A stretch of DNA of 64,000 nucleotides, taken from contig OZ038379.1 of the NCBI GenBank assembly GCA_964036045.1, forward strand, positions 52,576,001 through 52,640,000, written 5' to 3'. The notes beneath the pieces are model-generated. The model was not told the DNA's origin. It made no database searches and saw only the letters and a list, made by a program, of their open reading frames with translations. Positions within the stretch are counted from its first letter, which is position 1. Each line of letters begins with the position of its first letter. The translations under genes and the position numbers were made by a program. Source of the DNA: Eutreptiella sp. 'Long Island Sound 2002' (Eukaryota > Protista > Euglenida). Below, piece by piece: positions 5,470 to 47,912 of the stretch.

Positions 5470-7949
5470 CTTTATCAGATTGACAGCCTTCAAGGGCCCT
5501 GAATAAGCCATGTGAACCCTAAACGCTCATCAACTACGGTTCCTTGTGTATCCTTAAGCAATTGCTTGCCACTGGTCCACCCTGAGTGCCGTGCACGAAG
5601 GTTTAATTCATAAACTCGGCCTGAGATCCCAAAACCCGACTATGCTTGCCCCTTGAGTGTGGGTTTGCATGCACCCATCCCCTGCAGCAATAAATGCAAG
5701 CAGCCCTCGGTGATGGCAACATCAGCACAACAGCTATCGCTTGGATAGTGCAGTGACATGGATTAACACATGCACCTCTCCACAATATGTGTCCCCCATG
5801 CAACCCATTGAAGCTTCCGCATTGCAAAGCATTATCGTGACCTTGATTACTGCTCGGCATGTATTCCTCGAGACACATGAAATGCCATGTGCAACAGCGT
5901 GAATAGTTTGCTAGCAGGGGAACAAATGGAAACTGCACAACGTACTGACCACTGCCCCTTGACCCTCATCAACCCTTCGTAGGCGCCCTCTTTCCTTCTC
6001 GCCAATGCTCATCCGCTCCCAAACCCCCATGAATCACCGGAACCTATGACTTTGACATGGTGCACTTCTGCCCAGGTTGTTGAGTGAGTACTCAAGTGAC
6101 CCAGATTAAAAGCAAATTGTTAGTTTCAAATTTTGAATAAATGAACGGGTTAATATATAAATCGGCCAAATATTAACAAAGTGACGTTCGATTTTTTTTG
6201 TTTGGGTCATTTGTACCCTTTTTTTTCATGCACATATGGCGACCTCCAAGGGGTGTTATGTGGTACATTGCTGCACAAAAGGATAGTGGAGAGGTTCCAA
6301 TGTTGGGCGGTTGGGTGTCTTGGGCACCCCCCCTTCCCATTGCCCACTATCCTCCCCACTCCCCACACTCCCCACACTCCCCACCACCATCTTGTCCAGT
6401 GTAGCTTGTGTTATGTGTTTCTCTCGGGACACCCTTCTTCAGCTTAGCATGACGCTTACGCGTTCGAGTGGGGCCAAGAGTTTGCGTGACCCTTTGGTCT
6501 CACAAGTCCTTGGTAGGTGGGTGGCTTCCTCCCCTTTCGCTCGGGGCCGTTGGGCCGAGGCCACGGAGATTACCAACCTCCCCAGCATTCGCAACAAGCA
6601 AATGGCGACGATGAAGCGGTATGCCTCCCTCCTCTTCCCGGCCCCGGAACTCATTAGGCTACTCATGGACTTGAATGTCCCCAAGCTCAGCTTCGGCCAC
6701 GTGTCAGAGATCACACAAGACAAAGCACCAAATCAGTTCAACAACACACCTCTGGCTGATCAACACTTCAGAGTGCTGCTACCGCCCTCGGCGTTGTCAA
6801 TAGTATCAATTGCATAAGAATGTATGGCCAAAATGCCACAGGCCTTAGTGGACACTGTCCAAGGAACCCGCTGAGCCTTCGGGACACCACACAAACCCAA
6901 GCTCACACTAGCATGCACACATGTGACAGAGCATGCAAGTCGCCACAATCTCCTTAAAACATTAGACAAACAATACCCAAACCACGCTGCCAAATTCCAT
7001 CGGCTCCCGCCACTGAAACACACGCCTTCATTCCACTCTACAAAAGGCGGGGGTGGGGGCGGGTGGTGGGAACACAATAAATTTTCAACAAATTTGTACA
7101 CAACAATAGATGTAATCCCCCGTTCAAGAAAGACAAGTGGGCAAGTAAAACAAGGGATCACACAAGACAAAGCACCAAATGAGTTCAGCAATACACCTCT
7201 GGTACTCCTCATCCTCTCTTCCCATATCACATGAACAAAGCGTGACACCACGACACCAACCAAACCCGCTGCTCACCATGGAAATCAGCGCCGGCCGCTC
7301 AGCAGCTAAACAGCCACGGCGCCCGGCGCCAATATGCCAAAGCAACACACCAAAATGCTTACATGAGCTCACATCAAATGAAATATATATGCCACAGGGC
7401 GCACGAGCATCTGAGAGCCTTGCACGCAAATGTATCGCAACTGTACACCCCCAATCAGGCAGTTGGAGGATAGCGATACATATATGGCGCAAGTGCCCAC
7501 GCGCACGCGCCAACGATGCGTGCAAAGGTGGCTACCGGCATACTTAACATCGGGGCTCCCCTACGTCTTGAACAGTTGCTCGGCGTGGCATTGGAGGCGC
7601 TGCCCCAAGTCTTTTGCTGCCAACTCCAACAGCCCGGGCGCTTCGTCGCGCGCATACACGCCGTCAAACACCAACCGCGCCTGTGTCTCCAACCATATGC
7701 GGCGCACCGGTCTCCACGCCAATCGCCTGGCCCGCACTGCACACATGTGTAGACACGCACGCTCGCGCCTACGCTCCAGGGCCTGCGCCGAACGGTGGTG
7801 GTGCTGGCGGCCCCTGCGGTGCCGGCGGCTCCGGCCACGACGTGGCATATGACGACGCGGCATATGAATGGACGCTATGCAAAAAAAAGAAGCACCCCAA
7901 AAAAAGAGGTACTACAGGATCAAACCATCCACCTGCTGCACTTCCTCTG

Positions 7950-9900
7950 GATGATGAAGTAGTAGGCTCCACAAACGATAAGCCTGGCTACGCACACGCT
8001 GCATACTAGACTAATGATTTGAATCCGTCCTACTTGGCGGATCAGCCGGTTGTAATACCCCTAGCACCAAGTGCACCTCCACAATCAAGGGATGTTGCGT
8101 CAGACGCAACACGAAGGCACGCAACAGTCGCTAATGCCTATTCAAACACGTGGTAGCTCTCAGGGACAAAAATTGGCACGCCGCCACTTGAGAATCGGTC
8201 ACTAAAACAACATAAAACCATCCCAGTCGCACAGCCAACCGTACCAACGAAACCAAAATCCAAAGCTCGGCACTTTGCCGTGTGTGCCTTTCCAAGGGAA
8301 TAACCCGCGAACGAATACCCGATAGCTTCGGTATAAAACCCCTCCCCCGGTATCACATAACATCCAGCGCCGCATCACCAAACATCACACAGTGACGCAG
8401 CGCCAACAAATCAAGCACCGCCGACAGAGAATGGCAAATCGCAATACGCGCCAGCGCGGGCGGCTCCCATGGAACCATACACCGGACAATAGCAGTACAT
8501 AGCCCATGGAGTACTTTGCAAGGCGTGGGGCGCCCAAACCCCCCCAACCGGTCACAGCAATAGCTTCCTGCAACAAGGGGGCCCCCTCCCAAATGCGGTC
8601 GGAAATGCCAGTGGATGAACCTCAAGGCCTTTGAAAGCAAGCGGGATGACGGGCGGGATCGGGTGGCCAAACGCAACCAGATGTTAAACATCTGTAGAAC
8701 AGCCTGTGGGTGGGACCAGATCATGCGCACACCTAGGTTGACGTATTCACCTAAGAAAAAAACCTTAGTAATTGGCTCCGGGGTGCTTATAGCCGACACG
8801 AGGAACCCTGCCTCCTCCAAGGCCCGCACCACAGGCATTGTGATGGCGCAAAAACGCACCGGGTCTGGCTCTAGGATGAGAAAATCATCCAGGTAGTGGA
8901 AAAGTAGGTAACCATCCGGTATCAAGGGCCGCACGATATGGCTTAGGGATGTCTAGCAAAACATCGGGGAGTGTTTCCCCCCAAATGGCATCCGGGACAT
9001 ACAAAAAATTCTATCCCCACCCTCCCACCGCAAACGGAAACGAAAAGCCCTCGCATGTCGTCGCGGCAATGTAAAGCTCCGGCAGGCATTTTCCAAATCA
9101 ACATGCGCATAGATCAACGGTCTATTCGCCGGCCACTCCGACTTGCGCGAAATCTGCTCCCACCCATCCAACGAGAAGGACGCCGGCCTCTGCAAACGCT
9201 CATTCAATTCCACCAAGTTAAAAATCAGCGACACTTTCTCGGTGGTCTTAGGTATTATGAAACGTCAGCACGTGGCCCTCGGTGGGCAGCCTCTATCCAT
9301 AATGTTCACCACCACCCCGTTCAGGAGCCAACGAACCATGGGTAAAACTATGTTCTCCATAGTCAAGGACTAAACATCGCGAGGCAAGGAAAACTATGAA
9401 ATAGAGGCCTCAAAATTTGTAGGGGCTAGCTGATGCCACAACTCGTCAAATATCTCATAATTACCTACCGTACCCAGCCCGAGCCCAACCAATTCGGGAT
9501 CCACCTTGCGCAACTCAAGCATAGGTGATGTGGATAGGTGCAACCACGCATCCCAAGAGTCCGAAGTAAAATCCTCCAGGACATCAAAAATGACATCCGG
9601 CGCCAACGTGAGTCCAAAATCGTCATAGGTGACAAACATTCGCAGGATACACATATGCAGGCGCTGGATAAGCAACAACACACTTCAAGACAACGCCCGG
9701 TGAAGCCAAGGCTGGAAAGAAAAGAACATACCCAAAAAACCAACAAACAGTGGTACTGGGTCACACCTAACATACAACGGGTTACACCCACGCAACGGCC
9801 ACACACCTTGATCCGACGGGGCAAGCACCTGCAAGGACCCCCGCGCCGATCTCAGCACAGGGTCACAGGCAGATGGGATTCCGCGAATCACTCCCTCTGG
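7950..9900 (-). pseudogene. Degenerate DIRS/Ngaro-type RT-RNase H
   Basis: RFIIPKTTEKVSLIFNLVELN, VDLENA, RMPFGGKHSP, HYLDDFLI, FLGEYVNL and FGDAA motifs across frameshifted ORFs 8953-9234 and 8353-8934. Confidence 0.75.
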
Positions 9901-10530
9901 GCGCACTTCCAAGAGACCCCGCCACCCCCCTCACTCGACCCCGCCCCTGTGCCCTGGCCCTGCCGCTTACTTTGGGGACGCAAAGGCGCTTTGGGGGGGG
10001 GGGGGGGGGCGTGAAAGCCCACCAGGTTGCCGTCTCTTGGGGGTAGGCCGGCGGGTCCTCGCAGAACCCAAGCCCACCGACGCGCTCGCCGCACGATGCC
10101 GTCGGATAAGTAGGGACCAACAACCATCCTGTTGACCCTCGTTGTGTTGGTGCCACCTCCACCTATCGTACCGACTCCCGGGGCCTGGGCAGAACTCCTG
10201 GCACGCCTCGCCCGCTTTGCTCCAACCCCGGTCGGAGGTTGGGATCCTCGTGTGAACTCTGCGGAGACGGACTCGGATGTTGTGGTGGCGGCGGAGACAG
10301 CCGGTGCACCCCGGGCAGACGCCGGGGACTCTCCACACCCGGAGGACGCGGACGAAACACGCCGTATAATCAGAATCAGATCCAGCTCCTTTTGAGCCTC
10401 CGCAATATCCATATCAGCAAGAGATACAACACGCCCCGCGCGGACAGATACCACCGACGCAGCACCGGTGGTGGATCTCTCAGATTTGGCATACATGGCA
10501 TCGACCCACAGGTCCGCCAAGCCCTTGGTA

Positions 10531-13500
10531 CCTGTATGAAAGGTAGTTTTGTTCATCATAAATGGTTTTATGAAATATGAACGGATTTTGCTCTTGCTAG
10601 GGTACCCGTGGGCCATTTTCGTTCAAAATTGGGGGGGTTGGGTCAACACCCTTGAGGTGAGTTTTTTTCGTCCGCCGGGGGGTTTTTGGAAAGTTTGCCA
10701 TTTTCGCCAATTGTTGAAAATTATGAAAACATCCTCCCCTGTTCATAATTCCGTTCATAGTTCAGTTCATAATTGAGAACTCGTTTTATGAACGCGATGA
10801 GCCTTTTATGAACGCGTTTTATGAACGGATGCACAGGCACACAAAAATCGCTCAAGCTTCAATCTTTGCTCTACTTGCTTGTCCTTGCTTGTCCTTGCTT
10901 GTTCATGCCGCCCGAAACCTCAAGGCTGGGGCCAGTTGGGTCATGCCAAAGGGGGGCCGTGGCCTAGGTTTCACCCCCGTCCGGGGCCTAGGCATGGGCT
11001 TGGGCAGGTGGTTGGCCTGCGGGTTTGGCCGGGGGGTGCGCTAGGGCATCCACCTCCATGGGCCCACACAGCACCTCCCCAGCAAAGCCCCCCCCCCCCG
11101 GCCGAGAAGCCCAAACCCCCCGCCGTGCCCCCCCCCCCCCCAAACCCACGCAACCCAAAAAGCCCCCCCCCTCCGAAGCGCAAGTCCTGCAAATCGGGCA
11201 GCAGCTCATCGTCGCACTAGGCACACCCCGATGGACATGGGAAGGGGTTGAAGGGGAAGCAGCCGCGGCAGCAAAAGAGACGCGAGGAACCCCCCTCTTT
11301 GGAGGGGGATTAGTCACCTCACCCCCTGCTTGGTGAACAGGTGTATGTGCCCTACACCGATGGTGTCTACGCGGGGGTTGTAACCTCGGTTGCGGCGGGG
11401 TAAAGGGGGAGAGTGTGGGTGGAACACCCAGGCGAAAAGTCAATGTTTCGGGTTGAGCGGCATCTGTGGTATGCCTCTCATGCTGCAGCAGTGACCCATT
11501 GGGAGCAGCCGAAGGCTGCAGCTGTAGGTAAGAAGGCCGCCAAGGCCAAAAAGAAGCCTAACCCCAAACCGGACGGTGACCCGCCGGTTGAGCCGGCCCC
11601 CAAGCCAGCTAATCCTGAACCCAAGCCTGAGGCTGAGCTGGACAACAGGATCTTCTCGTCAGCACAACCCTTCCACCCCAACTCCCCTAGGCTCGCCCAG
11701 CAGGGCGTATTCGCCGCCCACGTGTCCGTTAGGCGGCGGGAGCGCTTCCACTCCCGCAGCCCGGAGAGGATGGCGCATCCCCTTTGGGGGTTGAGGAGCA
11801 GCAGCTGGTACGGGGCGGACAAGGCGATGCTGAACTCGGCGGTGCCCAACCGGTACCGGATGCAGACCCCCGCGACCTCCGCCGGGTTCACTTCCACGTC
11901 CACGACCTGTGACAGTGCCGTTCATCCCGCGTCCATAAAACACGTGCATAAAAGGCGTTCATGGTTCATAAACGGGCAGTGCAGGGTTGCTGAATGATGA
12001 ATGTTGAAGTATGAACGAATTATGAACGAATTGTGAACACACATACCTCAAAATCCGGTTCTGGTCTGATAGTCCCCATGGTGCCTAGGGCAGTCCGCAC
12101 ATTCGCAGCTGCGCTGGGAGGGGTGCCCTGGGGGGCGCCGGGGGGGCCGTGGTGCTGCTGGTGGCCGGGGCTGCGCGGCCAAAGGGCTTGATGGGGCGCG
12201 TGATGGCGAGGCCCTCCACGGCCCCCTCGTACGAGGCCTCCTGCCCCGGGTCATACACCCCCCCCAAAATGGATTCCGACTGGGGGATGCACTCCAACCT
12301 GTGCCCGGAGCGTTGCAGCTTCACCCACCCCCTTTACTCCCAGTGGAGGAACAACAGCTCCCAATGGGAGCCCCGCATCAAGGCCCCCCGTGGCCCCGAA
12401 AAAACTTTGGACTGCGTCAAATCCCCACCCCCAATTGGTTCAGGGATGGGGGATAGGGGCTTTCCCGGCAGGGACTTCCATGCCCATACCCCCCCCGTGT
12501 ACCGCAAGCCCCCCCCCCCCCCCCTCACCCGTGTTGTGGATGCGGTGCCGCAAAAGGCGGCGAAAGGCCAAGCGCAGGGTGACATAAGTCACCTCGGGGC
12601 TCGAAAAAGGGGGGGCATCGGGGGAGTACCCACTGTCCAGCGCTCCTTGCGCCCTGGGAGGGTACAGCACGTTGCGTTGGTTGGCGTGGCTGAGGCCCCA
12701 CGCATGGCCGGCCTCCCCCTCAACCACGGGGTCACGACCAAAACCCCTTCCCCCCCCTGCGCCCCCCCCCCCCCCCTGCCATGTCCTCGATCTCGGCCTT
12801 CACCTCCTCAATGTTGGCCACGGCCTCCTCCTCCTTCACCCCCCTCCCGCCCACTGCCTCCTTCTTCTTCCTCTTCTCCTCCTTCTTCTTCTCCTTCTTC
12901 CTCCTCTTCCTCTCCTGCTCCGAGGAGTCTGTTGACTCCTCACTCGAGGAGTCGGCGGCGGGTCGGGAGGCGAGGTGAGCGGCATGGGGTTGGGGATGGG
13001 CTTGAGGAGGCGGAGGAGCTTCAGGTGGAGGTGGAGGTGGAGGCTCAGCTGGAGCTGGAGCATGGGCTGCCAGTCGTGGCTCCTGTGGACATGGGGGACG
13101 CTGTTCATAAATCGTTCATAAAAGCGGTTCATAATTCATCAGTTCATAAATCCGTTCATAATTCATTTATGAGGGCAGTTTCGGTTTTATGAACGCCGAA
13201 TTATGAACTCAATATGAATGCGAACAACAACACACAGACAGCATGCCACCACGGCCAGGGTCGCCTTCTGGCTCTCCTCCGGCAGCTTCCTCAGCTCGGC
13301 GGCGTCCATGGATGGGCGAAGAGTAATAAAGCTGGGTCGCAGAGGGCACGTGGGTGGAGGGTGCTTGGGGGGTGGTGCTTAGAAGTGATGCGGCGGTGCA
13401 CGCCGCAGTGAGTGGGATGATATAGTGCAACAACGGCAGGTCAAAGGTTAGAAACCACCATTCCCAAACCTGCTGGACGACCATTGCTTCCCGTTCCACT

Positions 13501-15301
13501 GCACTCTTACCCGCAGGCCCACTGGAACTATGCCCGTTGTATCCCTTGTTCAAAATGTAATCCCACCCCACATGCATCCCCACTCTCGAGCATGGCATAA
13601 GAGTCCTCTTCTAGGAACAACAAATAGTGTGACCCCGACTCCCCGCACAGTGTTCCCGACACGCAGCAGCAACAGGTCGGCACAAAGGGCGTGGCACAAC
13701 CGGAATCGGCGAGTACAAAGTGCGTAGCAATTTTCGCAGCCCTACAACCGCTTGCCACATGGGGTCCTCCTCGACGTATGCAAGCAGCGGTGCAATCTGC
13801 TCCCAGGCCCAGAACACGTTGCGGGCCTCCTCCCCGTCCGGTGCGTTGTGCGCCCCCAACCGCACGCCACACCGGCTGCGGTACAGAATTTTTTGTACCT
13901 CCCCTGCAACCTCAGGGGGAGGATTTCCCACCTGGGCCTCCAGGAAGGCCACGAAGAGCCTCCCGAAGGCCATGCAACGGTGCAAAATGCACAAAAATAC
14001 CCGGTTTCCGGCTATGACCAGCAACGGCTCGCCGGTGCATCCTGCCGCATCCAAACTTTTGCGGGTCACCAGATAGCGACGATGATTGTTCGCATCCGAC
14101 CGTGTTATCCTCCGAGCAGCGACGCCATTCCAACGCTTGGCCGTGTTGTCACGCACGGCCTCGTTGAAAATGCTCCCCACCTGGGGAACCACGCCGATGC
14201 CCAGTAGCCGCCGGAGCGACGGCTGGTCCCCACCAAGGAGGAACGCTGCCGGCAACCAGCTGTCGCACCAGTAAAATTTTTTGCAGTCAATAATTGACTG
14301 CAGGACCTGTGTTCATAAAAGGTGTTCATAATTCGTGTTCATAAAACGGGTTCATAATTCATAAATCGGCAGCACGGCGTTTTATGACGGCAGTTTTCAA
14401 ATTGTGAACGCGCAAATTATGAACAACTTATGAACACGAAAATGCAGACTACAAACCTGTAGCACCTAAGCCCAAATTTGGCCCAGGGCAACCATATCAT
14501 TGTCCCCCGTGGCGGCCATGCCGATAACCCATAGGAAGGCGGGTGTGCGCGCCTTTTCTCCGTGGTTTAATAGCCCCACCGATAGCTGCGACCAACCGCC
14601 ACGGGCGCAAGGATACCCGTCACCCCGCACCACAAGGGTGAGGGGGCGGGTCCAGTCAATAGACTGGCATAGGGCTGGCCGGGATTGCACGTATTGTGCC
14701 CACGACCCCAGGGGCCAGCGGCGATCCGACGATGGGGGGTCGGCACATTCCACCGGGGGGGAGAACGCAAGCGGAGCGGTCAATGACTTCCACGTTGCGT
14801 CAAGTTGGTCCCGTGTGGGGATGGGCCGTGGGAAGGGCAGCGGGCGGTGTAGGTGTCGCCCCGGCGAGTGATGTACTCAGACAACACGCGGAAGCCGGAC
14901 CGGGGTGCACTCAACTCCAAAAGGAGCCCTATAAAATAGGGTGCGGGAAAGAAGGCCTCCGCATACGTACGGATGGCCTGCACCTTGGTTTTGTGGACCG
15001 CTGGGAGCGGAGCGTGGTCCATTGCCTCCGTAAAACGGGCCCGGATGAGGGGGGACGATGACATCCATTGGGCCAACAGGCCGGAACACTTGCTGTCCCG
15101 AAGACTGGTGGCACCACTGAGCCGAACAAGCATCATGTTCAGCTCCGTGAAGACGGAGGGAGGATAAGACATACCGAAATCCGTGGACAAAGAAGCGTTC
15201 GTAAAAGCTGTTCATAATTCATGGTTCATATATGAACCGTTTATATATGAACCGTTCATATATGAAAAATGAATTATGAACCATACTACTTTTCACACAG
15301 G
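10531..15301 (-). mobile_element. Element X: 4.8-kb TIR transposon, TA TSD, CCTGT...ACAGG ends, spliced Transib/Chapaev-like transposase plus accessory ORFs
   Basis: Imperfect ~27-bp TIRs CCTGTATGAAAGGTAGTTTTGTTCAT / ATGAACCATACTACTTTTCACACAGG; TA at 10529-10530 and 15302-15303; transposase motifs VVRGDG, LLGGDQPSLRRLLG, LCILHRCMAFGR, DGEEARNVF, HYLLFLEED; TTCATAA/TTATGAAC arrays. Confidence 0.8.
13209..15190 (-). pseudogene. Element X transposase (DDE, RAG1/Transib/Chapaev-like core), multi-exon and disrupted
   Basis: ORF pieces 14780-15190, 14466-14783, 13611-14255 and 13209-13598; a motif array at ~14310-14440 separates two of the pieces; putative D1 (RGDG) and D2 (GGDQ) visible; catalytic Glu region frameshifted. 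Confidence 0.65.
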
Positions 15302-15303
15302 TA

Positions 15304-17125
15304 CCTAGGGAGAGCACAACCAAGCCCCCAATCAGTAGCTTGGATGCCAACGGGCCACGGCAGCTCCAGTGCCCCAACCACTGCAGGGTCAAAATACCCC
15401 AAAGCGTACTCCAGAGCCGTGGCTAGCCGGCGCCACCGCGCCCACCAAAGGAAGTAGGGGACGTTGGGGGAGGGGTGGAGGAGGCAGCGCCCCCCCCCCC
15501 GCCACAGGCTGTGCCACCGGTGACCCGCCTACGCGGAGTCGCGGAGGAGGCTTGCGAAGGTCTTCTCGACTGCCTCAACCCCTCCCCGAAGCAACGGTTG
15601 ACCTTTAGGCATGCAACAGGTCTGGGCAAAGGCCATGACGAAACGCACCCAAGACCGTCCCCACCCATAGACCGGCCTTCGCACCTCTCGATGACCGCCC
15701 AATTTGGTCGTCACGAATAGGACCACGGAGTCCCTTGCCAGTCATGCTGGGAGTTCCCGGCGCCGCGGGTCAGTATGGGACAGACCACGTCAATTCTCCA
15801 CAGGTACGTCTCAGCCGTTCGGGATGCTGAGGATGTCCAACTGCTTCCGGATTGTGTGCGGGCCATCTACTAGAGATTTGCGAAGTCGAGCAAGCCCACG
15901 CCCGGGCAGCCGTACCTGGAACCATACTGACTCCGTCTCCTCTGGTCCAGAGCGTCATCACCACAAGAGCAAATTGTGGCAGCTCTTGCTTGCCTCGGTT
16001 GGTTGCTTTTTCTAAGTGTGTCTGAAGCGCTGTGCATCACAGCGTGTCATCAAGCGACGACCGCGGTGCCCTCGACCCCTCGAAGCCAGCAATGTGGACA
16101 ACACAAATCGGTACCTCGTACGGGATTTGGGTGCCCATCCCTGCACGCCCACGGCTGCCACCCGATACGAGCCCACAGCCGCCATCACCATGGCCGGGCA
16201 GGCCGTCGCCGCCCTAAAGGTCGGCCCTGGAGCATGGGTGGGCCCAGCACGTAGCTCCCCGCGACCAACTGCGAATCCGAACACCAGCAGGGCCACCCCC
16301 ACCCGGTCCGGCTGCAGAGGTCGAGGACCAGTGGGGGCATTGGAAGTGCCAATGCCTCAATTGCTCTCGCGGGACATTTGCTTTGGTGCATCTGTGACAG
16401 TCACCCGATGGCCTGGCGGATAACGGTATCCACCTCCCCTTCTTCGACACCCAATGAACGACGCTATGTCGCATGGCGACGTCGATGCCCTTATACTTGA
16501 AAGACGGACAGCCCCTCTAGACGGCCTCCGACCAGATCAACGCATCCAGCGAGTTTGCTGGGTCCGCTCGGTTGTTGTCATCCGACACATAGCGTCGGGC
16601 ATACGTGTGCCGCGAGTCGAGGATGATACCCCACAGCCTGCATGATAAGCGGTCTCCTCGTGGACATTCCATGGTGTTGCCCATGACATCGGACGGTCGA
16701 AGTGGCGCAACATCAACCGAGCGCACGTGGTCACGCAAGGCTTCGCCCGACTGCCTCATCCAACTTGCCACTCTGTCGCCTCCCAAGAAATGCTCCACTG
16801 CCGCCAGGCTCAAGTCCAATACAGCCTTGCGCTAAGCGACTACCAAACCCTCCAAGCGTGCCTACAGATGTCCAATGCTTCCTGTTGAGACTGCAGAAAA
16901 GCTCTCATCTCATCCGCAGTCATCTGCATGGTGTCGAGCACTGCCGAGCCGCTCCCAGGGCTCGATAGGTCTTGGTTGGGGCCTTTAGATGACGAGCTTT
17001 TAAAAGGGGACTTAACGACTTGCATGCTGCGTCAACAATGACACAATAAATTTTCAACAAACCTGTACACAACAGTAGATGTGATCCCCTTTTCAAGAAA
17101 GACAAGTGGGCAAGTAAAACAGGGG
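15304..17125 (-). pseudogene. Degenerate tyrosine-recombinase retrotransposon remnant (RNase H then YR)
   Basis: KIYCVIVDAA (RNase H start), YVSDDNNRADPANS (RNase H end), WAPKSRTRYRF (YR N-terminal-like), SFGGRGGAG...LQWLGHWS (YR C-terminal-like); 17047-17125 is also homologous to 7079-7156. Confidence 0.5.
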
Positions 17126-17149
17126 TTCATGTGTTGCTGGGGGTCCGCC

Positions 17150-20100
17150 TACACGGCCGTAACGGGCCGCCCGTCCCCCCGGCCCATCCCCACTCGGGAG
17201 AAGTTCGTGGACACGTGGAAGGAATTGGCCACCCCCCTTGAGCTACCGCCACCTGTGTCCATCCCCGACCCCCCTATGAGTGGCCTCTCTTGGCCGCTAC
17301 AATCGTGGGCCAAGTACGTCCAATGGCGTCCCTCGCTAGTGGACCACATTGACTAGACAAGGCCCCTCAACTTCATCGTGCGTGGGGATGTGTACCCATA
17401 CGCCGGTGGTAGTTGGACCCAACTCTCCATCTCAACCACGGCGTACGTGGCCACACACCCGTGTACTTGTGGGTGATAGGGATGGCCGTGTGCGGGGACA
17501 AGAGCATGGCCACACTAGTAACGAAATGGGCCGGGAACTCGCAAGCTTTTGGCCCATTCGTTGTTTGTCAATGTTTGCGTTAATTTCTCAACATTAATAT
17601 CTGGTTTTCGGCCAAGATTAACACCGACTGAAAAATTAACTTAACCTTAATCTCCAGAAACTAATCCAAATATCAACCAATGTCTTTTGCAAAGGTATTG
17701 CCGTCCATACCCGAGTGCAAGAAGTTTTATGGCGTTGGGGGTCTCCACCTGCCGCCCCCCGAGGAGTCAAGCAAAAACTCCTCGGATAGGCCGCGGAGGG
17801 AGAAGAAGGAGAAGAAGAAAAAGAGGAAGGAGAGGAGGGAGAACGGGGCAAGGAGTCAAGGAGGGGCCAGCCTGCCGGGAGGGGGGGGTGGAGGAGAGGG
17901 GGGGAAGTGGTGGACGCGGGATTTAGGGACGGTGCTGGGGACGGGGACACCGAGGGAGAGGAAATTGAGCAAGTGCACCACCCCAAATGCAAGCCCCCCG
18001 CCCCCAGTGGCTCCTCAAGGCCCTGGGCCCCACATGCGCTACCGCTAGGATGCCGGGGGCGGTCGCCTGCTCAGCCCGGGATCGTGAGCAAGGCCGCGCA
18101 GGGGACCAGCCAGTTTTATCCTCCCCCCACCACAACCACATGACGGTCCTAAGGATTTTCCGTCGGCGATTGCGGTGCCTCATTAGCTGTCACGGCGAAT
18201 CCAACGGCACATGGGGGAAGGATGGCATCAGTGGGGGGATTTGGGTCTACAAACCCCACTGTGGAGCCCCCCTCTACCCCCTTCCTGAGGAAGGCATCAG
18301 TGTAGGCAGTTTGCCTGCCGTCAATTTGCTTTTTGACCCACGCCCTTTCCGTTTCCAAACGGCCCATTACTCGGTGCTACTGCAGCACTGGTGCCAGCCG
18401 GGGTAGCGCTAGCAGTGGCGCCGGGAAAAGGCCGTCTTGTTCGGGCCGATGTGGGCCACAATCCTGCCCCTGCCCAAGCCAGTGCACGACCCTGGGTGTC
18501 AGGCCTCCTACGAAGGGGTGCTGCCCAACACCTAGCTTTTCAAGGGGGCTGTGAAGGCCGCCAACACGGCAAAACCGGCGGCCCCAGCGCGCGAGGCTGC
18601 CAAACCGGCGACCCCGCTGAGACCCCCAGTGCGGCATCGCTGTTCCGAGATGCCATGGGGGCGGTGCAGACGCAAGGCACCCAGGGAGCCTTCGAGGTAT
18701 GGTGCCTACATGTAGATTAGATTTTAGGTCGCGGACGTTATTTTCTCGAGATTAATAAATAATTCTTGTGCCGCTGCTGCCCATATTAAAAGTTAAAGGT
18801 TAATATTAATGTCGAAAAATTAATACATTTGCCGCAAAAATTAACCTTGTCAATGCTCTTTTTGTGTGTGTTTTTTTAGGTTGTGGACGTTCTGGTGAAT
18901 GCCACACACGCCAAGCCCGTCCGTTTAGCCTGGAGAGATGCGGAGGGCACCCCGGAAGTACCCCCGGGTGCCCTTCATCAAATAGTGTCCCGAGATCCAC
19001 CCTTGGGCGTTGCCATCCTTCGTGGCCTACGTGCTGACGTGAGTGAGAGACCGTGTGGGCGGTTTCCGACTCGTGGGTCACGCCCAACGACAGGAATGCC
19101 AGGGCGCTCGCTCTTCTTCGCCGTGGTATCCCCCCCATCCTTTGGGGGGTCGGCGGCCTTGGTGGGGGGGGGCTTGTGGGCGGTGGTGGGCTTGGGGGCG
19201 GGCATGGCCTTGGAGGCCTTTGCGGGGGGGGGGGGGGTAGGAGGGAGGGGGCTTCCTTGGTCTTTTTGGCCCAGGGCATCGCCCCGTCATCCGACTCGTT
19301 GGACTCGAAGGCGAAGCGCTTTTTTTCCGCGGGGGGGGGGGGGGTTGGCTTGGAGTGGGGGTTTTGGAGTGGTGGTGGATGCCCCCGCCTCCTCCTCGTC
19401 GCTTACCCCACCGCCTCCCATGGCCCCCCACAACTCTTCACCCCCCGTATAACCCACCTCCGGCATGCGGGCTCAGCGGGCCGGAAATGACGCGCATGGT
19501 CGCCCACGTTCCCTACGCCTCAAAGAGAAGGGCACCGTGCACGGTGTCCATGGGCGGAAGGGTGGTGCTGTTTGGGTGGAATACCCAGGCAGCACCACCC
19601 TTTCCAAAGTGGCCTGGCAGCTCTCCTTCCCCACCGCCGAGGAGGCCGAGCGGCATGCGCAAGATGCCCAAGGGGGGCAAGGGGGCAACAAGAACCCCAA
19701 GAAACCCCCCCCCCCCCGCCCCCGCAAATCAAGAGACTAACCCCCCGACTAACCCCGTAAAGGACCCGAACTCACCCACCGAACCCACAAACCCAAGTAA
19801 CCCCCCATCCGGACGCACAAAGATGTGGGACCCCGCTACAGGGCCCCATGAGGTGTGAGGGCCCACATAGGGACCCAATAGGCCACAATGCCCATGCACA
19901 TCACGCATGCACGCTCACACAGTGGGTTCCATGACTTGTTGTGCCATTGTAGGGAGGGTTAATATTTGCGGCAGTGGGTTAATTTTTGGCAGGTTAATAT
20001 TAACGCCGGCGACTCATTAATTTTCAGTTTCTCAAATATTAATCCAAAAATTAAAATCAAAATTAACGCCGAGAGTCATTTTAACATTGTTTTTACAGCC

Positions 20101-20280
20101 ACACTGGTAGGACCCCCCAACCAAACCCCGGGTGAAAATGACACCCAAACCCGTAAGGCAACCCGTGGGTGTCGTCATTTGCATGCAAAACCCCTTTACG
20201 CCCTCAAAAAAGCTGAAACTTTCCGTTAACGTGTTAATTTTTGGTCAGATATTAAGAGTTTTGGTTTTAACTTGGGTCAG
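17150..20280 (+). mobile_element. Element Y: truncated relative of element X with TTAAT/ATTAA arrays
   Basis: WPLQSWAKYVQWRPSLVDHID*TRPLNFIVRGD aligns by eye with X WPLGSWAQYVQSRPALCQSIDWTRPLTLVVRGD; shares the FE|VVDV intron (18697-18879); arrays at ~17570-17680, 18720-18860, 19950-20100 and 20220-20280; termini not resolved. Confidence 0.6.
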
Positions 20281-20735
20281 GCAAAAACATGGGGGGAATG
20301 AAAGGTTGTTTGGCTGCAGATTCTGTACATTTGGGGTGCTTGGGTGTGGCATAGATTCTCTTTATGGGAGGCATTGAGACTACTGCGCGGTGCGCGTGGT
20401 GTGGGTCCGCACCCCAACACTGCTGCCCATACGTCTGTCGACGAGAACGGGGCACGGCGCAGACACAATAAATGCAACCAGCGCCTGAAAGATCATCTGG
20501 AGGCACATCTTCAGAGCGAATGCTTCAAATAAAGCGCCACCCTTGGGACTGACCTCCTCATACGCATGTCACCTCCAAAGGTATGCCCACAACTTTTTAA
20601 ATATCGGTTCGACTTCTTCTGGGCGCCCTCCGATAACCACCCCCCAAAAGTAACAAAAAGGGCCTATGGTTTATAAAGGGGCCAGCGCTGTACAGCTCAT
20701 AGGACCTCAAGCCACCCAACCTGGACCCACAAAAC

Positions 20736-21189
20736 CTGTGCAGCACCGCGCACTCGCGCAGGTAGTCAGCGATGTGCTGAACCCCATAGCTTGTGATGCC
20801 GCACCCACTGAGGTCCAGCGCGGTGATGTAGACGTTGCTCCGGAGCGCGCTTGCCAGCACCGCACAGGCGCTGTCGTCAAGGGTCGCACGCTTGGCCCGG
20901 GGAGTGTCCTCCACAGGCGGGCGCAAGTCGAGGCGCCGCAGCGTCGGAGCGTTGGCGCGGATGAGCGGGATTGCCCGCTTGAGCGCAAGCGGGTACCGGT
21001 TCATGAGCACCGCCGCTTCCAGCGCCTTAAGCGCCGGCAGCGTCACTTTGTTGGCGCCGCTGCAGTCCAATTCCGTCAAGACATCATTGGCGTTAAGGGC
21101 GGCGATCAGAGCATCGATGCCGACATCCGTGATCGCCTGGTTCTGGTACAGATTTAGGCTGGTGAGGGCCTGATTCACGTGCAGAATAC
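20736..21189 (-). CDS. LRR protein exon 5 (gene continues; next exon not found)
   Basis: Acceptor TTCTGCAG|GT completes a phase-1 Gly (FLAG|ILHVNQALTSLNL); best donor CACAG|GTTTTG (phase 2), alternative GCG|GTGCTG 10 nt earlier; ITALDLSGCGITSYG repeat. Confidence 0.85.
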
Positions 21190-21475
21190 CTGCAGAAGGG
21201 AGAGTCATTGGGGCGAGGCACAGAATCATGAAGCGCTGGGGCTGCAGCGTCGCCGATTAGAGACACCCCCTGGCTGACGGCATATCGCTTGAACAACTCG
21301 TGGGGGTATGACGTGACATTCAATGGAATGTGCCGCTCAAGCGCGAGCCCGGCGGTCGAACGCTGAGGATTGGACGAGATCACAAGCGGGTGGCTGGCAC
21401 TCGTCAGTCACCGGGGGTTGGGCCCCAGCCGCCAGCTGGGGGACAGCCGAGAGGGGGGGCAGGGGGGTGGGGGGG

Positions 21476-25173: not shown

Positions 25174-27410
25174 CTGAGAGACGAATGCGGGGGGCTGTGG
25201 AATGCTCTGTAGACAGGGCGGGAGGGGATGGGGCTGTTGGGCTTGGAGGGCGCCCGTCAGGATTGATCACTTCTGTTCAACTGGCACCACCACCACCACC
25301 ACCACTATTACCGCAAACACCACCACCACCGTCCCCATTCACAAGTTCCACGAATCAACCACCTCTGCGGTCTGTTTGGGGGAGAATGGGATGGCAATCC
25401 CACTGCTCGGCAGGGCTGGAGTGGGTGCAGCGGAAATATGAAGTGCTCTTGATGCGTACTGCAGCACCGCCAGTAGGCTTTGCCTCCGTGCCAGCAGTAA
25501 AATATTGGGAACACGCTGGCTCACTTCGCATCCCACAATTCCCAACGCTCACACTCCCGTGGACCCCCAATAGACAAGATGTGAGAGGCCTTGCCTTGCG
25601 CAAGAACAGGCCACTGCTTGGTGACCTTTGGGGGGGGTGGGGAGGGATGCAATTCCAGACCCACCCACGCACCCACATCCGAAAACTTGCCCTCAGGGGG
25701 TTGCTGCGATTGACTACAGAGGCCGGGCATTTTCGACACAAGGGACGTCACGAAGCAATGACCTGAAACATCCGGTGAAGCTGCCCATTTCTGGGGTCCA
25801 CCCGTCAAACATCGTGTGCGCGCACAAAAAAACGCACCTCGAACATCAGTCAAGCGGTTGCTGCCTGTGACAAAACATGAGGCCCAAGAGCAATTGCAAC
25901 TGAATTGCCCTCTACGACGAAGCCGTTCATGGCAACACCAACAACAAAGACAGCCCCACCCTTGCTCTCCTTCGCGCCCCGTCCCCGCCTCCATTGTGCT
26001 CGTGTCGCCCGTGTTTGCAACTTCGATATCATGTTTGAGTGTGAGTTTGACGTCCGGTGGAATCTACTCAACTGTTGTCGGATAACCGTGCTAACTTTCA
26101 TACTTCAGTGCGCAGTGGGGGGCCAGGGTTTTGCTCTGTTGCTACGGGCACGCCGCATCCCAAACCGCAGTGCCGAGTCATATCCAGGTCAGAGACACCC
26201 AGACACTTGTCGCATGCAGTCTACCGAAATTCCAAGTATCGAGGGGTGGTATTACCGTGTGGTCTGCAGCACTCTTACAACAGGCATAAACGGGGGGGGC
26301 TTGTTTCAACAAGATGTCCACCAAGAGCCTCAGGAACGATTCACTTGGAAGCATGTAACGGTAGCACATTGTTTCCCACGTCTGGCACTCACTCAGGGGG
26401 TTTCCCACACCCAAATCAGGGAGTCGAATCATTTTTGAAGCACCATCATCGTTCTTGCGTACCATACCATACCACGAGGGGGCGGGAAGTGGGTCCATGA
26501 AGGCTGGTGCACTATGGTGCAGTGTCAAGTGCCACGTCGTTTGTGACCTGCTTAGAGGCCAAGGTCATTTGGGGGGGGGGGAGTGAGTGTGGGAGGGTGA
26601 GGGGGGATAGGCGGATGCAATTTTGTAAGTGACAGTGGGATGGTTGCCCCACGCCCCCATGGCGTCGACCCCACCACCACCCTTCATCACCCCCAAGCTG
26701 TGAAGCTGGGATGATCACCACCAATGTGGGAAATTGTTTCACAGGGCCAAGCGCGTCCCAACTTGCTTTGACAAGTCCAAACATGAGGCGGGACATGCTC
26801 CCACGGTCCATAAACAAGTGCTGCTTCTAACCCTCATCTCTCCCATCCAGCGCCTGTATGCCTCACATTCAGACATTCCCAAGATGGTGAAAATCGGAGG
26901 GTGCTCACCACCACCAATGTGGGAAATGCACCACAGGGCCGGGTGATTCCGGGTCCGAGCTCGGGGGGGGGGGTCTGATTCCCAGCTGATCCATGTGCAG
27001 AGCAAGGCAGTGGGCCCGTTCCCTGTACCTGTCCCACCCATCACCCTGGCGGTGGTCCTACCCTGAACTTTGGGGGGGGGGGGCGCAACCAAAAGCATTG
27101 GAGGCAGCTGTGCACACCCGTGAAGAGAGTCCCTTTGGGGCACGGGCACCCATCATTGATGTCCGCCAGACACCCTCTGTAGCCACTGGAGTCCCAGGGA
27201 CCAAGGGAGACCTTGTGACAAGGCAGATTGTTGCATAATGTTTTGAATGCGCCGGGGGGGGGGGGGGGGCAACACCCCCTCCTTTTTTTTGGGGGGGGGG
27301 CGGGCAGCTCAGGGTAGACCTCCCTGTACGCCAAAAAGTTTGGTGCGTGCACCAACAGACTGCTGGCACACAATAAACAACAGAATACTCGCCACAAAAC
27401 ACTGCCCCAA

Positions 27411-27480
27411 CCACCACCACCACCACCACCACCACCACCACCACCACCACCACCACCACCACCACCACCACCACCACCAA
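27411..27480. repeat. (CAC)n microsatellite in LRR intron 3
   Basis: Uninterrupted CAC run starting about 10 nt past the donor; explains the spurious poly-His/Gly/Val ORFs. Confidence 0.95.
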
Positions 27481-27490
27481 CATTGAATAC

Positions 27491-27829
27491 CGAGTCGTTG
27501 CGCTCCAAGGCGATGACCAAGGCGCGAGCGCCCTCATCACGCACGAAGTTGTCCTTCAGATTGACAGTTGCAAGGAAGTCATTGATTTGCAGCAGCTCCG
27601 CCAGGGCCTTGGCCCCCTCTGGGCCAATGAAATTGTCCCGCAAGTCCAAAACCCGCACAAATGTATTGCTGCGGAGGGCGTCCGCCAGCAACAGTGCGCT
27701 AAGATTGTTGTAGTACGACTTCAGGTCCTCCGGGCGCTTGGTCACAGTATTGCCCACAGTACCAGAGCTGGCGCCGCACAAGCGCAGCTCCAGCAGCGAG
27801 GCGTCATTGGCCATGATCATGGGCAGCAC
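27491..27829 (-). CDS. LRR protein exon 3
   Basis: Acceptor TGTTGCAG|GTG, donor TCG|GTATTC; 339 nt; joins ELKQ|VLPMIMAND and ERNDS|VVELDLSGN in frame. Confidence 0.9.
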
Positions 27830-30800
27830 CTGCAACAGAGGACCGGAACAAGAAGGGGACAGCAGTGAGTCAACCGGCTGCAAGAAGGGTGTCAACCGGG
27901 CAGGCACCCCCTGCCCTCTCCGGGCCATCTCTCATAGAAGAGCTTGGGTTGTGGTCAGAAATCTCCCACCATCTAGGCCACACTCAAAACGCGTGTGAAT
28001 TGTGGCTACAGAACCCTCCTACAGCATCCCTTCCAGGGTAGAACCTAAACACACCACATTTGAAACCATCTTTGAGTGGTAGCGGGCAAACACATGAATA
28101 CTATGTCCCACAACTTGTGCAGCCTACAAGCCCTTGGTCTGGACAGACGGCCAAATGGTTGAACTGTGCATGTACTATTCTCAAGGCACCCCCATATGGG
28201 GCACGGCTGGCAGTCAGATCTCTCCACCAGGGCTCGTCCTTTTTTATGTGATTTAATGGCATGTCTGGCAAACACTAACAGACACCATTTGGTGTGGGTT
28301 GCCATGTTACCCAGACAATGGCATGATGGGGGAATGCCTGCATTGCAGACACCTTTTTGGAAGCATTTCCCCATAAAAATGCCCCATTCCTCCCTCCCAT
28401 AAACGGTGCATTGGGCTGAGATACCTCAGCAGGCACCAACGGTTGAAGCATGCCGCGGCATGCCGCAGCACCTGATTTTGTGGCCTGTTGGTGGGAGTTT
28501 TGAAGCATGCCGCAGCATGCCGCAGCACACTGAAAATTCGGTTCAGACCAAAATATGAATTCCATCTCTGAGCCGTCAATCAGCAGAGATGGCTGGTACT
28601 CTAGTGGTAAAATGCAGCGTCTGTGAATGAAAGGTCCCTTGTTCAATTCCTGGAGCTCGCAGTCTGCAGCAACACAGGCAGAGACAGCAGTGCTCTGTCC
28701 CACCTATTTTTTTTCCTTTTTGCTGTGTTGTGCTTTGACAGGTCCTTGTTATTTTCACTTTGTCTTCTGATGTCTACAGTTGAACCCACTGACGAGGGGA
28801 AACACAACCCAAGAGGAACAAGGAGACAACCAGGAGTACTGCAGATTGTTTGGGCAATTGAAGAAGGCATCGGGCAGTTCCTATGTTGTACAGACACCCA
28901 GGGTGAAAGTCAAAATGGGAAATTTTATTGTACTTTCTGTGCAGTTTGGCTGTCATCAAAGGGTGCCATCTTGAAGGACCGTGTTTGGGTAAAAACAACA
29001 AACAACCAGATGACCACTCATGAAATGATTCTGCTGTGTCCATCTTTGCAGGGTGTCAGGAGATGCATTGCTTTGTGATTGATGTTATGTTTTGCCACCT
29101 TTGCAGCTTTTTGGAAATTTGGGTTACCCCCCACCAATGGCTTGAAGCATGCCGCAGCATGCCGTAGCATGCCGCGGCACAGCAAATTCTGGGGGACCGT
29201 TGGTGCCTGCAGCGACAAACTCCCCATGTTCTTTCCACTGCCCTCGCAACTTATCCATGTCCTTGCCCATGTCCTCAATCCTCATTTGGATCTCCCCTAT
29301 GACTTGGGGTGGGGTGTCTCTCACCTACAACCCCCACCACACACTGCAAAAAAACCCATCTTTTGTCGAAAACACACCGAGAAACAACAATTGCACACTG
29401 GGCTCAGCACAAATTGGATGTTGCAGTCACCATCCCATCCCAACAAGCCCCTACCATCAGCAAATTGCTGCCCAGTGTTGTGCAAGTCAATTGTGTTGCA
29501 AGATTACACGGCCACCCAGCTCCATGCTCCCCTTGCCTCCAATAATGATAATCATTCCCGTATCCTCTGCATATCTTGCTTTCAGAATTCCAGCCATTTC
29601 CAGCCAAGTCATGGCAGATCACCACCATATGGAAAGCACTGGGGACCCGTTGTACTGAGTCCTGATCACCCTGAAACAATGGCACAAGCAGGCACTTTGT
29701 GGCATGGGCTGCTCACTATGCATCTCACGGGTCGCCTTGCCGTTCTTTCTGTACCTGTTGTTCTGACAAGAGTTTGCAAGCAAACAGGTATGAGAGGATG
29801 GGTATGGTGTCTGCTGACAAATCATGTCAGGTGGTTTCGGAGGCGGGCGCGGGCTTTCCTCGTCAGTGGCCCCCACACCTGAATCATCTCAGTGCACCCT
29901 TGGGCACAGGGGGAGGGGGGGGGGGGTTGTGAAGAGAGAGGTGGGTGTCCAACAAATGCTGGTTCGGGATCCAGTGACCGAGGTCATGTCTTTTGTATGA
30001 CCTCCAGGTCATTTGTGGGGGAGGAGGGTGCAGTTTTATGGAGGAGGGTAGAATGCTTGTCCTGGAAGAGGACGGGGCAGGGGGGGGGGGGGGATGAGAA
30101 AGGCAGAGTATGTTTGCCGGTTGGTATTTCCTGTCGCACACACTTGATTGTGTAGAGGCGTGCCTCCAGACTGTGGCTGAAGGGAGTGGGGTAAGACCTA
30201 CTAAGGGTGAGCAAAGCGAAAGTGTGCATAGAAGAGAGGGGAGGTGACCAGAGGGCCGGGGGGATGGGAAGTTTAATAATGCCGATTTGTGGGAAATAGT
30301 AGTGGGAGATTAATCCAGCTGTCTAAGGATAACCACTTCAAAAAGCGGCACAGTGCGCCGGGAGGGCACGTGTGCCCGCTTAGTCAAAGTGTGGCCAGGG
30401 GGAAGGAGGGCACTGGGTCCTTGCATACTGGTGTCTGTATTTTGAGCAGTGTGTGCTGAGTGTTGCCGTGCATTATCACTTGTTGTGCACTTTCACTGCC
30501 GACAGGCTTGAGGAGCAAGACCCATGTGGCTATGCCAAAATCACATCATGGTGGGACTTTCACATTGGTGGCCCTGGTAGTCGGGGCAGCCACTCCATGA
30601 CTGCGAACCCCATTGCTTCTGACCCGGGGTCTAGCTCTTGACAAGGGGCAGAATGCCTTGAAAATGTGGCGCACCTCTGATGGGCAACACGTGGTGATCC
30701 ACCCTGTGTCACACACCCCACATCAGTGGTGCCAAGTACCCTCTACACCTCACAACCCCGGCGGCGGAGGAGTAAGGAGGCGATGGAGACGGACTGCTAC

Positions 30801-46044: not shown

Positions 46045-46552
46045 TACGAGAAAATCTCAAGAGGAATCACAAAGGACATTGGCCCGTCACGATAAGCAAC
46101 GTACCGGGGCAAATTATTTCGGAAGGGGGCAGTGGAACAAATGGCAAGGAGATGGGTTCTGGAAGTAGTCTTGCGGGCACTAAAGGACTTGGCAAGCAAA
46201 CAAGCAGCAGGGCACTGCACGGTGTGCATATTCCTTTGGCTACCATATGCGAATATTTTCACAACCGGTCCACCGGTCTTTGTTAACGCACCGTTTCGGC
46301 TAGGCAAAATGACCAATTGTTCAGTTGAGACCGTTTCACACCACTTTAGCTTTCTGTAACCAACCGGTTAGTTCGGGGAGACCGGTCGGACCGGTCCGAC
46401 CGGTCTTTGCAAACTGAACGGACCGGACCACTTTAGCACACTTTGGAGCACTTTGTGATGTGTGTGTAGTGTGTGTGCGTGTGTTGTGTTGTGCGTGTTC
46501 ACACCTTTGCACAGACATTGCAATGCATGGGAGTCAATCCTCAATTCATGGT

Positions 46553-47912
46553 TCATTCATGATGGTCCGCAAAGCATTCGACGTGTAGATAGCACCCACA
46601 TGCTTTGCACTTGTATCGAGTGGTGCCCATCCCACAATGTACACAAGCGCCCCGCTTCCCAACCACTATTGGTACATGCTTGTCCACCACCTCAATTTGC
46701 CTTGCCGGAAAAATGTATCTCATCAACCTCCATTGCCAGTCAAACATTGTTTCACCCCCCGGACTAAGGCGCAACGCTTGGCATGACGTAAATGCATTTG
46801 TTGCCGCTATCCTTAACACCATCCCCCCAAGTGCCTTCCACCATGATTGAAACCGGTGCTCTTCCCGGTGTTGTAAGCACATTTGGTTAAACGTATCCAC
46901 CCCCGGGGCAAACCTACGGTAGTTGGCAATTATCCCCGGTAGGTGGTATCGTCCACTTCGGTGTGGGAGCGAACCTCCGGTCAAGCAATTGGTTAGTAGT
47001 GGTACCACCTTTGCCGGCTTGCGCCCCACTTTGGGGTTTTTGTATACCGAGAGTGCATACCGATGTTCCTTGTACCACCGTGTTCACATCCCCCGGGTCT
47101 AATCCAACGTTCCCATCTTGCACCAAAGCACTTGTGGAAGTGAGCATCAAGAACGGACGCTCTTGTGCACTTAGCATCGCCGCCGCATCATGAGACCCAA
47201 AGAATGAGTCCGCCACAAGCACCTTTCCGGGTGGAGTCACATCATTCCAAAGTTGCACGATTTCAAAGGCATCGTAGTGGCCTGCAAACCGGCTCCGTGA
47301 CTCCGGACCCACACGAGGGGCTGCACCACGGTACAAATACACGTGCCAAATGCAATGGCTTTGTGCGTCGCACAACGCGTACAGTTTCACACCGGTGCTG
47401 TGAGGCTTGCGCAGTATGAACTGGCGGATTACAAACAACCCCTTGTGGGGGACCACGGTCTCATCCCCGCACACCACGTCACCTAGTTCCCATCCGCCTT
47501 GCCAGTGCATCGTGCACAGCTCAATCAACGCATCCGCATCCGGGTCCGCAAGTCGCTGCAGCACATAAAACTGTCGCCTGCTAGGAAACAGTTCCGCCAT
47601 GTATGCATTGTAGTGCATACACTCTTTGTCCCACACATCATCTATTCTGCGCGGCTGCAGCATGCCCAAGCCAATTCGAAACAGCACGTACCGCGGAAGA
47701 AGGTCCACTAGGTCTACCCGGTTGGCCTCTTCCAAACACAGCGTCATGGCCTCCAAAATTGGCTGGAACATGAAGTTCCAGACAGCAACGGGGGTCCTGC
47801 CATCCTCGGTGCCCTCGAGGAGGCTGCGCCCTTTGCGGAGTTCGTCTCCAGAATCCCATCGGGCCTCTAGAGGGGCCAGGGGTCTTGGTTCCCATGGTGG
47901 AGCAGCAGGCAT
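46553..47912 (-). pseudogene. piggyBac DDD transposase with C-terminal Cys-rich domain, one frameshift near 47072
   Basis: VCGDETVV, RKPHSTGVKLY, VADSFFGS, GVDTFNQ and C-terminal CVHC...YKCKACGCYLHVECF; ORFs 46914-47912 and 46553-47029 join via YKEHRYALSVYKNPK. Confidence 0.9.

Follow-up and report, generated by a model that had tools for sequence, protein, structure and literature searches.

In classical transposons with terminal inverted repeats (TIRs) the binding sites for element-encoded proteins are confined to the subterminal few hundred bases, e.g. the AAACGG hexamers of Ac, the 12-bp TnpA motifs of En/Spm and the THAP sites of the P element and Galileo. VANDAL21 (Hi) and VANC constitute an anti-silencing system of Arabidopsis in which motif arrays are bound by an element-encoded protein, as demonstrated by chromatin immunoprecipitation (ChIP) and electrophoretic mobility shift assays (EMSA) (Hosaka et al. 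2017, PMC5735166). VANDAL elements are Mutator-like and have three genes, VANC being a dedicated protein, and their motifs are tandem repeats in one orientation (PMC5735166). VANDAL21/VANC is the nearest described system to two transposons, termed X and Y, that are located in a 64,000-nt stretch of DNA, hereafter the window, from Eutreptiella sp. 'Long Island Sound 2002' (GCA_964036045.1, OZ038379.1, positions 52,576,001-52,640,000, forward strand). Both X and Y are dead, and they represent two sister families of one kind of TIR DNA transposon with a predicted RAG1-like DDE (Asp-Asp-Glu) transposase of ~1300 residues, encoded by a gene of four exons of ~1 kb each. Arrays of a word of 7-8 bp, which is private to the family, sit in every non-coding island of the element, i.e. 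in both subterminal regions, in introns B, C and D and in the spacer following the stop codon.

The starting point was a preliminary description of the window, according to which X and Y share one intron that is filled with a different motif in each. Element X (10522-15310, minus strand) is a decayed full-length RAG1-like TIR transposon with the TIRs CCCTAGGTACCTGTGTGAAAAGTAG and CCCTTGGTACCTGTATGAAAGGTAG at its two ends, and the intron in question is its intron D (11907-12046, minus strand; GT at 12046-12045, AG at 11908-11907), a GT-AG intron of 140 nt in phase 0. Element Y (17139-20284, plus strand) belongs to the RTTAAY family and is 5'-truncated, internally deleted and decayed; its homologue of intron D, intron c (18697-18879, plus strand; GT from 18697, end of AG at 18879), is likewise of the GT-AG type and in phase 0, with a length of 183 nt. 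With a slash marking each border, the junctions read ...GATTTTGAG/GTATGT...GTCACAG/GTCGTGGAC in X and ...GCCTTCGAG/GTATGG...TTTTTTAG/GTTGTGGAC in Y, so that the borders originally given are exact. The flanking translations are TIRPEPDFE/VVDVEVNPAEV and TQGTQGAFE/VVDVLVNATHAK (core AFE/VVDVLVN), respectively, and reading through the intron leads to a stop after 8 codons in X and after 7 in Y. Both sites thus combine GT-AG borders with an interrupted coding sequence, as is expected for a spliceosomal intron.

The conservation of position and flanking residues, which had been claimed for X and Y, extends further: GT, AG, phase 0 and the conserved flanking residues are kept in four elements from three subfamilies, i.e. 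in X, in Y of the window, in L011, a full-length element of the Y family (L011:10374-10546, SFE/VIDVVVN), and in Z, a third subfamily (GAG/GTGTGT...CTGCAG/GTC, reading GFGE/VKDVVV). Three of these four introns (140, 194 and 173 nt) would break the reading frame if kept, as their lengths are not multiples of 3. The interiors of the four are unalignable except for each family's own word, and the suggested replacement of the intron content by the family's motif proves to be a complete turnover in the X, Y and Z families. Intron D of X contains three exact copies of GTTCATA plus mutated ones, and the sister copies L001 and L003 have an intact TTATGAAC where X carries TTATGCAC, TTATGGAC and GATGAAC. 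Intron c of Y contains five RTTAAY and has motif positions in common with its homologue in L011. As also stated in the preliminary description, the intron motif of X recurs in the TIR region, where five copies of GTTCATA lie within 87 nt of the 5' subterminal array (island A, 15205-15301, minus strand).

The two introns are indeed packed with their motif, but this is not a peculiarity of theirs, since arrays are found in all non-coding islands. X has six AT-rich islands at distances of ~1.2 kb, all on the minus strand, namely island A, the internal islands B (14298-14456), C (13083-13249) and D, the post-coding island E (10720-10845; six motif copies) and the 3' subterminal island F, which is a motif array together with the 3' TIR (10522-10612). 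Each internal island has about three forward copies of GTTCATAA followed by 3-6 reverse copies (three forward and five reverse in both B and C), and a forward block followed by a reverse block is a frequent arrangement in general. The copies are commonly ~13 nt apart in X, and within the X family 47 of 59 neighbours of the same orientation are spaced by 11-15 nt. The X islands add up to 805 nt and contain 28 copies of GTTCATA, as against none in the remaining 3966 nt of the element and two in the 59 kb outside it, and dinucleotide shuffles of the islands contain 0.2 copies on average and 2 at most. In Y, RTTAAY (typically GTTAAT) is found 18 times in the 634 nt of four islands and not at all in 2579 nt of exons (shuffle mean 1.9). 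Apart from intron c these islands, all on the plus strand, are b, the homologue of intron B (17546-17703; four RTTAAY), d, a post-stop array (19944-20098; seven RTTAAY), and e with the degraded 3' terminus (20182-20284). Z has its word, GTTTAA(A), 20 times in islands and once elsewhere in the element, and the words of X, Y and Z are mutually exclusive between the elements. The exons contain 0 or 1 motif per 2.6-4.2 kb, i.e. the equal density in exons and introns that had been named as the outcome speaking against an intronic store of sites is not observed. Dense family-specific arrays in introns and in terminal or intergenic DNA, scarcity in exons and a word that differs between relatives are the features of VANC-type motifs, and all of them are found here.

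A search with words of X exon 2 returned 198 pieces of open reading frames (ORFs), all on large contigs of one ENA assembly, and an exhaustive search with a more intact relative returned 525; thirteen loci were retrieved. They fall into seven subfamilies with 27-88% protein identity and seven words, all of which start with GTT: GTTCATA (X), GTTAAT (Y), GTTTAA (Z), GTTTCTAG (L010), GTTTCGATC (L013), CGTTCTAC (L006) and GTTTGAA (L012). The layout of the islands is largely conserved across the seven subfamilies, though the sequence of every island has turned over. L001 and L003 are copies of the X family with the same islands and the same word as X, and L001:4947-9460 is 87% identical to X over the full length. 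Z is represented by the nearly intact locus L002, which shows ~50% protein identity to X and has its islands at the positions of those in X. L011, the exon 1 protein of which represents 93 member sequences, has six islands; its part 6842-11960 aligns with Y at 69-82% identity, and the proteins of X and Y share ~58% of their residues across the last two thirds of exon 1.

Island B allows a direct comparison of elements with and without the intron. In X it comprises 159 nt with the borders CAG/GTTTGT...CTGCAG/TC; its position is common to X, Z, L011, L010 and L013, and the donor hexamer GTTTGT to the first four of these. In Z, exon 1 starts with ATG, has exactly 241 codons and ends with CAG/GTTTGT, exon 2 is open from the AG, and splicing joins ...WAENLQ to SIHDCKQF. 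In L010, which comes from another sample and shows 36% identity, intron B sits at an identical codon position and is filled with arrays of GTTTCTAG and CTAGAA, and L013 (another sample, ~31%) has it at the same position with the donor GTTGCT and arrays of GTTTCGATC. L006 (another sample, 32%) and L012 (from the assembly of L001-L005, ~28%) are without intron B and have a 1.45-kb exon instead, which is flanked by arrays of CGTTCTAC and GTTTGAA, respectively. Their proteins P0189 (L006) and P0259 (L012) read continuously over the junction (...WQHNLSAIQAIIDG and ...WAHNLERIQHVLDNG) in a gapless alignment. As two relatives lacking B read straight through the junction, its status is validated, i.e. 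there is good comparative evidence that island B is an intron, and its absence from the two most distant lineages implies that at least one intron was gained or lost. In Y the splice sites of island b are mutated, GT to CT and AG to CG. The borders of intron C are approximate: X, L001 and Z share a candidate donor, G/GT, but in the X family it is ambiguous whether the frame continues into exon 3, the beginning of which is of low complexity.

All sequence and fold searches were made per exon. An AlphaFold model of exon 2 (predicted local distance difference test (pLDDT) score of 77, alignment of 18 sequences) was compared with the PDB by Foldseek, and the top 43 matches are RAG1 or amphioxus RAG1L, with a best E-value of 1.2e-5 and template modelling (TM) scores of 0.45-0.49 by query; Transib of Helicoverpa (HzTransib) comes next with an E-value of 0.09. 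An Atlas feature search likewise led to RAG1 clusters. PDB sequence searches with single exons gave chance matches only, and a PDB profile search reached amphioxus RAG1L only at an E-value of 0.54 and had no match for exon 1. Blocks of conserved residues comprise RGDxYP in exon 1 and GGDxPW, CILHCxMAxGRL, APDGEET and DVVESLNxxLK in exon 2, and the near-invariant D of RGDxYP, D of GGD and E of VESLN are the putative DDE residues. The transposase is RAG1-like in its predicted fold, and we refrain from assigning it to Transib. Its TIRs begin with CCCTAG or CCCTTG; no start of the CACWRTG type and, at the flanks of X, L001 and L011, no 5-bp target-site duplication was seen. In the X family the TIR extends 9 nt past a CCTGTG start (CCCTAGGTA and CCCTTGGTA; window 15302-15310 and 10522-10530, L001:4938-4946 and 9461-9469). 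The elements are flanked by CT/CT (X), TG/TG (L001) and TA/AT (L011), and the target duplication is thus, judged from X and L001, at most 2 bp. A reading of the elements as TA-inserting was rejected, as the TA lies inside the longer TIR beginning with CCCTAGGTA and the flanks differ between copies.

What are the arrays for? By analogy with VANDAL/VANC, the best reading in our view, although at even odds, is that they are docking sites at which a protein of the element itself binds DNA sequence-specifically. The DNA-binding part would reside in the transposase polypeptide or in another product of the same gene, and its sites would occupy every stretch that is free of coding constraint. Being spread over the whole element, the sites may keep the protein concentrated on its own copy, which could serve cis-preference and the pairing of the ends or, as with VANC, an activation and anti-silencing private to the family. 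When the binding specificity drifts, all arrays and the ends would change together, resulting in a private word for each subfamily. The idea expressed in the preliminary description, that introns store binding sites, finds partial support in that the pattern is what sites stored in this way would look like. We regard the architecture as the stronger argument, i.e. the islands have turned over and an intron was gained or lost, yet the private word of the ends is dense everywhere, and arrays flank the exon even where intron B is absent (L006 and L012).

Several observations weigh against docking sites. Pfam yields no match, neither a RAG1 model nor any other family, for any exon of X, Y and Z, no DNA-binding domain was recognised, and the structure model predicted for exon 1 was of low confidence (pLDDT 44). 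Splicing of intron D is a reasonable deduction from the comparison of relatives; a search with exon 4 of Z for a relative lacking this intron returned seven pieces, all from the same family, and none was intronless. Binding of a protein to the arrays and the purpose of such binding are, like the splicing of intron D, steps that we infer. The alignment of the islands of Y and L011 speaks in favour of the arrays, with 85% of the motif columns (motif in either copy) identical as compared to 61% of the other columns (Fisher p 3e-8), but this difference may be inflated as an aligner can anchor on repeated motifs. The copies are mostly dead and similarity within a family thus reflects descent. Finally, concerted evolution by gene conversion among the islands could homogenise the words without any protein.

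An unrelated element of the window shows the same architecture. A piggyBac transposon (46300-51400) with a gene on the minus strand (Pfam DDE_Tnp_1_7, E-value 2.7e-12) has GACCGGTC palindromes and CACTTTAG units of its own, which are found at the ends and between the coding blocks but are missing from the exons. The islands lie at ~46380, 48012-48095, 48591-48705, 49689-49836, 50819-50883, 51127 and 51280, and only seven copies of these words are present in the other 58.9 kb of the window. We speculate, with little confidence, that the RAG1-like and piggyBac superfamilies independently filled all of their own introns with arrays of their end words, and that the arrays have a dual role, i.e. 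docking for cis-recognition or anti-silencing as well as the formation of fold-back stems that aid intron removal, which would make them a possible source of the structured introns of euglenids.

Fold-back as such is also the alternative to docking sites that survives best, although we consider it doubtful. The splice sites would be drawn together by pairing of the forward with the reverse blocks in the pre-mRNA, as happens in structured euglenid introns, and the word would match the ends because the introns arose from, or were homogenised with, the subterminal repeats. In Euglena, introns that require base pairing close to their ends are abundant (PMC12501133), and as compared to dinucleotide shuffles the folding of introns B and C of X and of intron B of Z is strongly favoured (z of -4.3, -4.4 and -3.2, respectively). 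In contrast, the two introns of the preliminary description and their Z counterpart fold no better than shuffles (-0.3 for intron D of X, +1.6 for intron c of Y, -0.1 for intron D of Z), and the same holds for islands b and d of Y (-1.1 and -0.6); with z near zero or positive, the hairpin was rejected as a general explanation for the two introns. Moreover, the arrays are also present in the unspliced subterminal regions and in the post-stop spacer, the borders are GT-AG rather than N3CAG...CTGN5-6, and pairing leaves unexplained why each element has one word and why the word starts with GTT in every family.

Quite improbable is a second alternative, in which the islands are derivatives of the family itself, similar to miniature inverted-repeat transposable elements (MITEs) or introners, that landed in the parent element, are spliced out and have no function for it. 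Each internal island does look like the array of a left end joined to that of a right end, the two most distant lineages lack intron B, and introners derived from TIR transposons are documented (PMC9860276, PMC12130899). The island positions are conserved, however, between families down to 31-50% protein identity, no target-site duplications flank the islands, TIR cores are found only at the two ends of the element and in none of the internal islands, and solo arrays outside elements are absent from the ~170 kb of the window and loci, a small sample compared to the genome. A nested MITE was rejected on the last two grounds. Scarcely credible, finally, is that the islands are no introns but intergenic promoters or terminators, with a family-specific transcription-factor site, between several separate genes: prokaryote-style gene callers do report each inter-island segment of ~1 kb as an ORF of its own, and X and Z have an ATG in conserved context immediately ahead of island C, but exons 2 and 4 open directly from the AG and have no conserved start codon, copies that look alive have kept the GT and the AG, the junction of exons 1 and 2 is continuous in P0189 and P0259, and a DDE enzyme needs the catalytic D from exon 1 in the same polypeptide as the D and E from exon 2, which contradicts separate genes.

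The exons of X, all on the minus strand, can be assigned as follows. Exon 1 (14457-15172) contains the region of the first catalytic D (VVRGDGYP); the whole exon aligns with Z and L010, and its part 14876-14469 (from ...PFPRPIPTR) is the one aligned with Y. It is disrupted by a frameshift near 14870 and by a nonsense codon at 14467-14465, where TAG replaces the CAG that is present in L001 and L003. Exon 2 (13250-14297) comprises the second D, a C..H motif, the residue taken as the E of the triad and a helical C-terminal part that is RAG1-like. Exon 3 (12047-13082) is Pro-rich, then Lys/Glu-rich and ends in a conserved block, with changes of frame at long G runs, and frameshifts are part of the decay of X. 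Exon 4 (10846-11906) starts with VVDVEVN... and encodes a small beta-rich C-terminal domain; 580 nt of it (11062-11641) are inverted as compared to the sister copy L001. An intact homologue of 334 residues is provided by P0264, a sister copy of Z, in which exon 4 is a single intact frame of 334 codons that ends with QEV and a stop just before island E. Exon 4 of Y (18880-19858, plus strand) ends with ...GPHEV and a stop, Z and P0264 with ...GSQEV and a stop. Y is devoid of its 5' end and also of the entire catalytic exon 2 with island C, the latter two being contained in L011:8058-9438. A different deletion derivative is P0263, a Z-family copy from the same assembly as L002, in which the middle of exon 2 is fused to the last 20 nt of intron D (...KENTEAV-PACTPLQ-VKDVVV).

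As a result of the inversion in exon 4 of X, the small beta domain of the C-terminus lies in antisense orientation relative to the gene, and Y has a similar inversion (window 19144-19494 versus L011:10743-11118). The inverted segments of both elements are bracketed by long G/C runs, which could mediate inversion or confuse the assembly. G/C homopolymers of 12-16 nt are located at changes of frame in exons 3 and 4 of X, Z and L011 (window 12500-12530, 12745-12775, 11070-11145 and 19140-19360; L002:7600-7980), and one such site is read through in a single frame in Y of the window; the frame changes could be length errors of the assembly, decay or slippage sites. The small beta-rich domain at the C-terminal end of the RAG1-like elements (...VVWVxxPDNPELYEVPRGLLF...; window 19465-19740 and 11413-11560, both plus strand) has a comparable counterpart at the N-terminal end of the piggyBac protein (50480-50760, minus strand), and neither of them matches Pfam. 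Two ORFs with leucine-rich repeats (LRRs) of the RNI type (20597-21229 and 27041-27928, both minus strand; Pfam LRR_6, E-values 2e-8 and 6e-8) are the sole non-transposon coding signal noticed in the window, the large ORFs of which are pieces of transposons or LRR proteins. Rfam has no match in the window, and a search for a spliced-leader pattern was likewise negative. Reverse-transcriptase ORFs (Pfam RVT_1) are located at 57759-59543 of the window (minus strand) and at L003:4777-5679, where a copy of the X family is cut short in its 5' part by a retroelement. Several AT-rich islands with AAAATGG and CCAAAA arrays in L003:1-2550 apparently belong to another repeat family.

How does this element relate to the systems described? 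A search of the literature yielded no paper on motif arrays in introns of transposase genes outside VANDAL, nor on arrays of end words in introns of RAG1-like or piggyBac elements. It resembles introners, i.e. transposon-derived introns of host genes (PMC9860276, PMC12130899), in having introns composed of inverted repeats similar to transposon ends, but its islands are without TIRs or target duplications and occupy conserved positions inside the transposon's own gene. With the structured introns of euglenids (PMC12501133) it has in common that some of its introns (B and C of X, B of Z) form strong hairpins; the N3-CAG...CTG-N5-6/R borders of nonconventional and intermediate introns, however, are absent, and the introns shared by X and Y have no significant fold. 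This link provides a testable route from transposon ends to introns.

As in RAG1, Transib and ProtoRAG (RAG1L), the product of exon 2 has a predicted fold similar to that of the catalytic and C-terminal region of RAG1 and shows conserved acidic and Cys/His positions, whereas the long additional C-terminal exons, the CCCTAG start of the TIR instead of a CACWRTG heptamer and the absence of a Pfam match to RAG1 set it apart. Our findings also bear on the use of accessory sites beside the cleavage site by enzymes of the RAG1 type. Like classical subterminal repeats, the arrays would provide multiple short family-specific protein sites, here predicted ones, inside the ends and next to the TIR, but they reappear at intervals of ~1.2 kb along the interior of the element and in each intron. 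If they are docking sites, the transposon spreads its recognition sites over its full length and leaves the coding sequence untouched, with the introns as storage. The seven subfamilies would then be a natural series in which binding specificity and some forty sites per element changed together while the GTT start was kept, and thus a compact system for the co-evolution of a protein and its sites. The likeness to VANDAL/VANC is that related families carry different words. The differences are that the transposase here is RAG1-like, that no VANC-like protein is recognisable, that the arrays often consist of a forward block followed by a reverse block with the same word flanking the TIRs, and that the evidence here is that of sequence. 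Taken together, if docking sites they are, the principle of VANDAL/VANC would not be limited to plants and Mutator elements but would also apply to protist transposons of the RAG1-like and piggyBac types.

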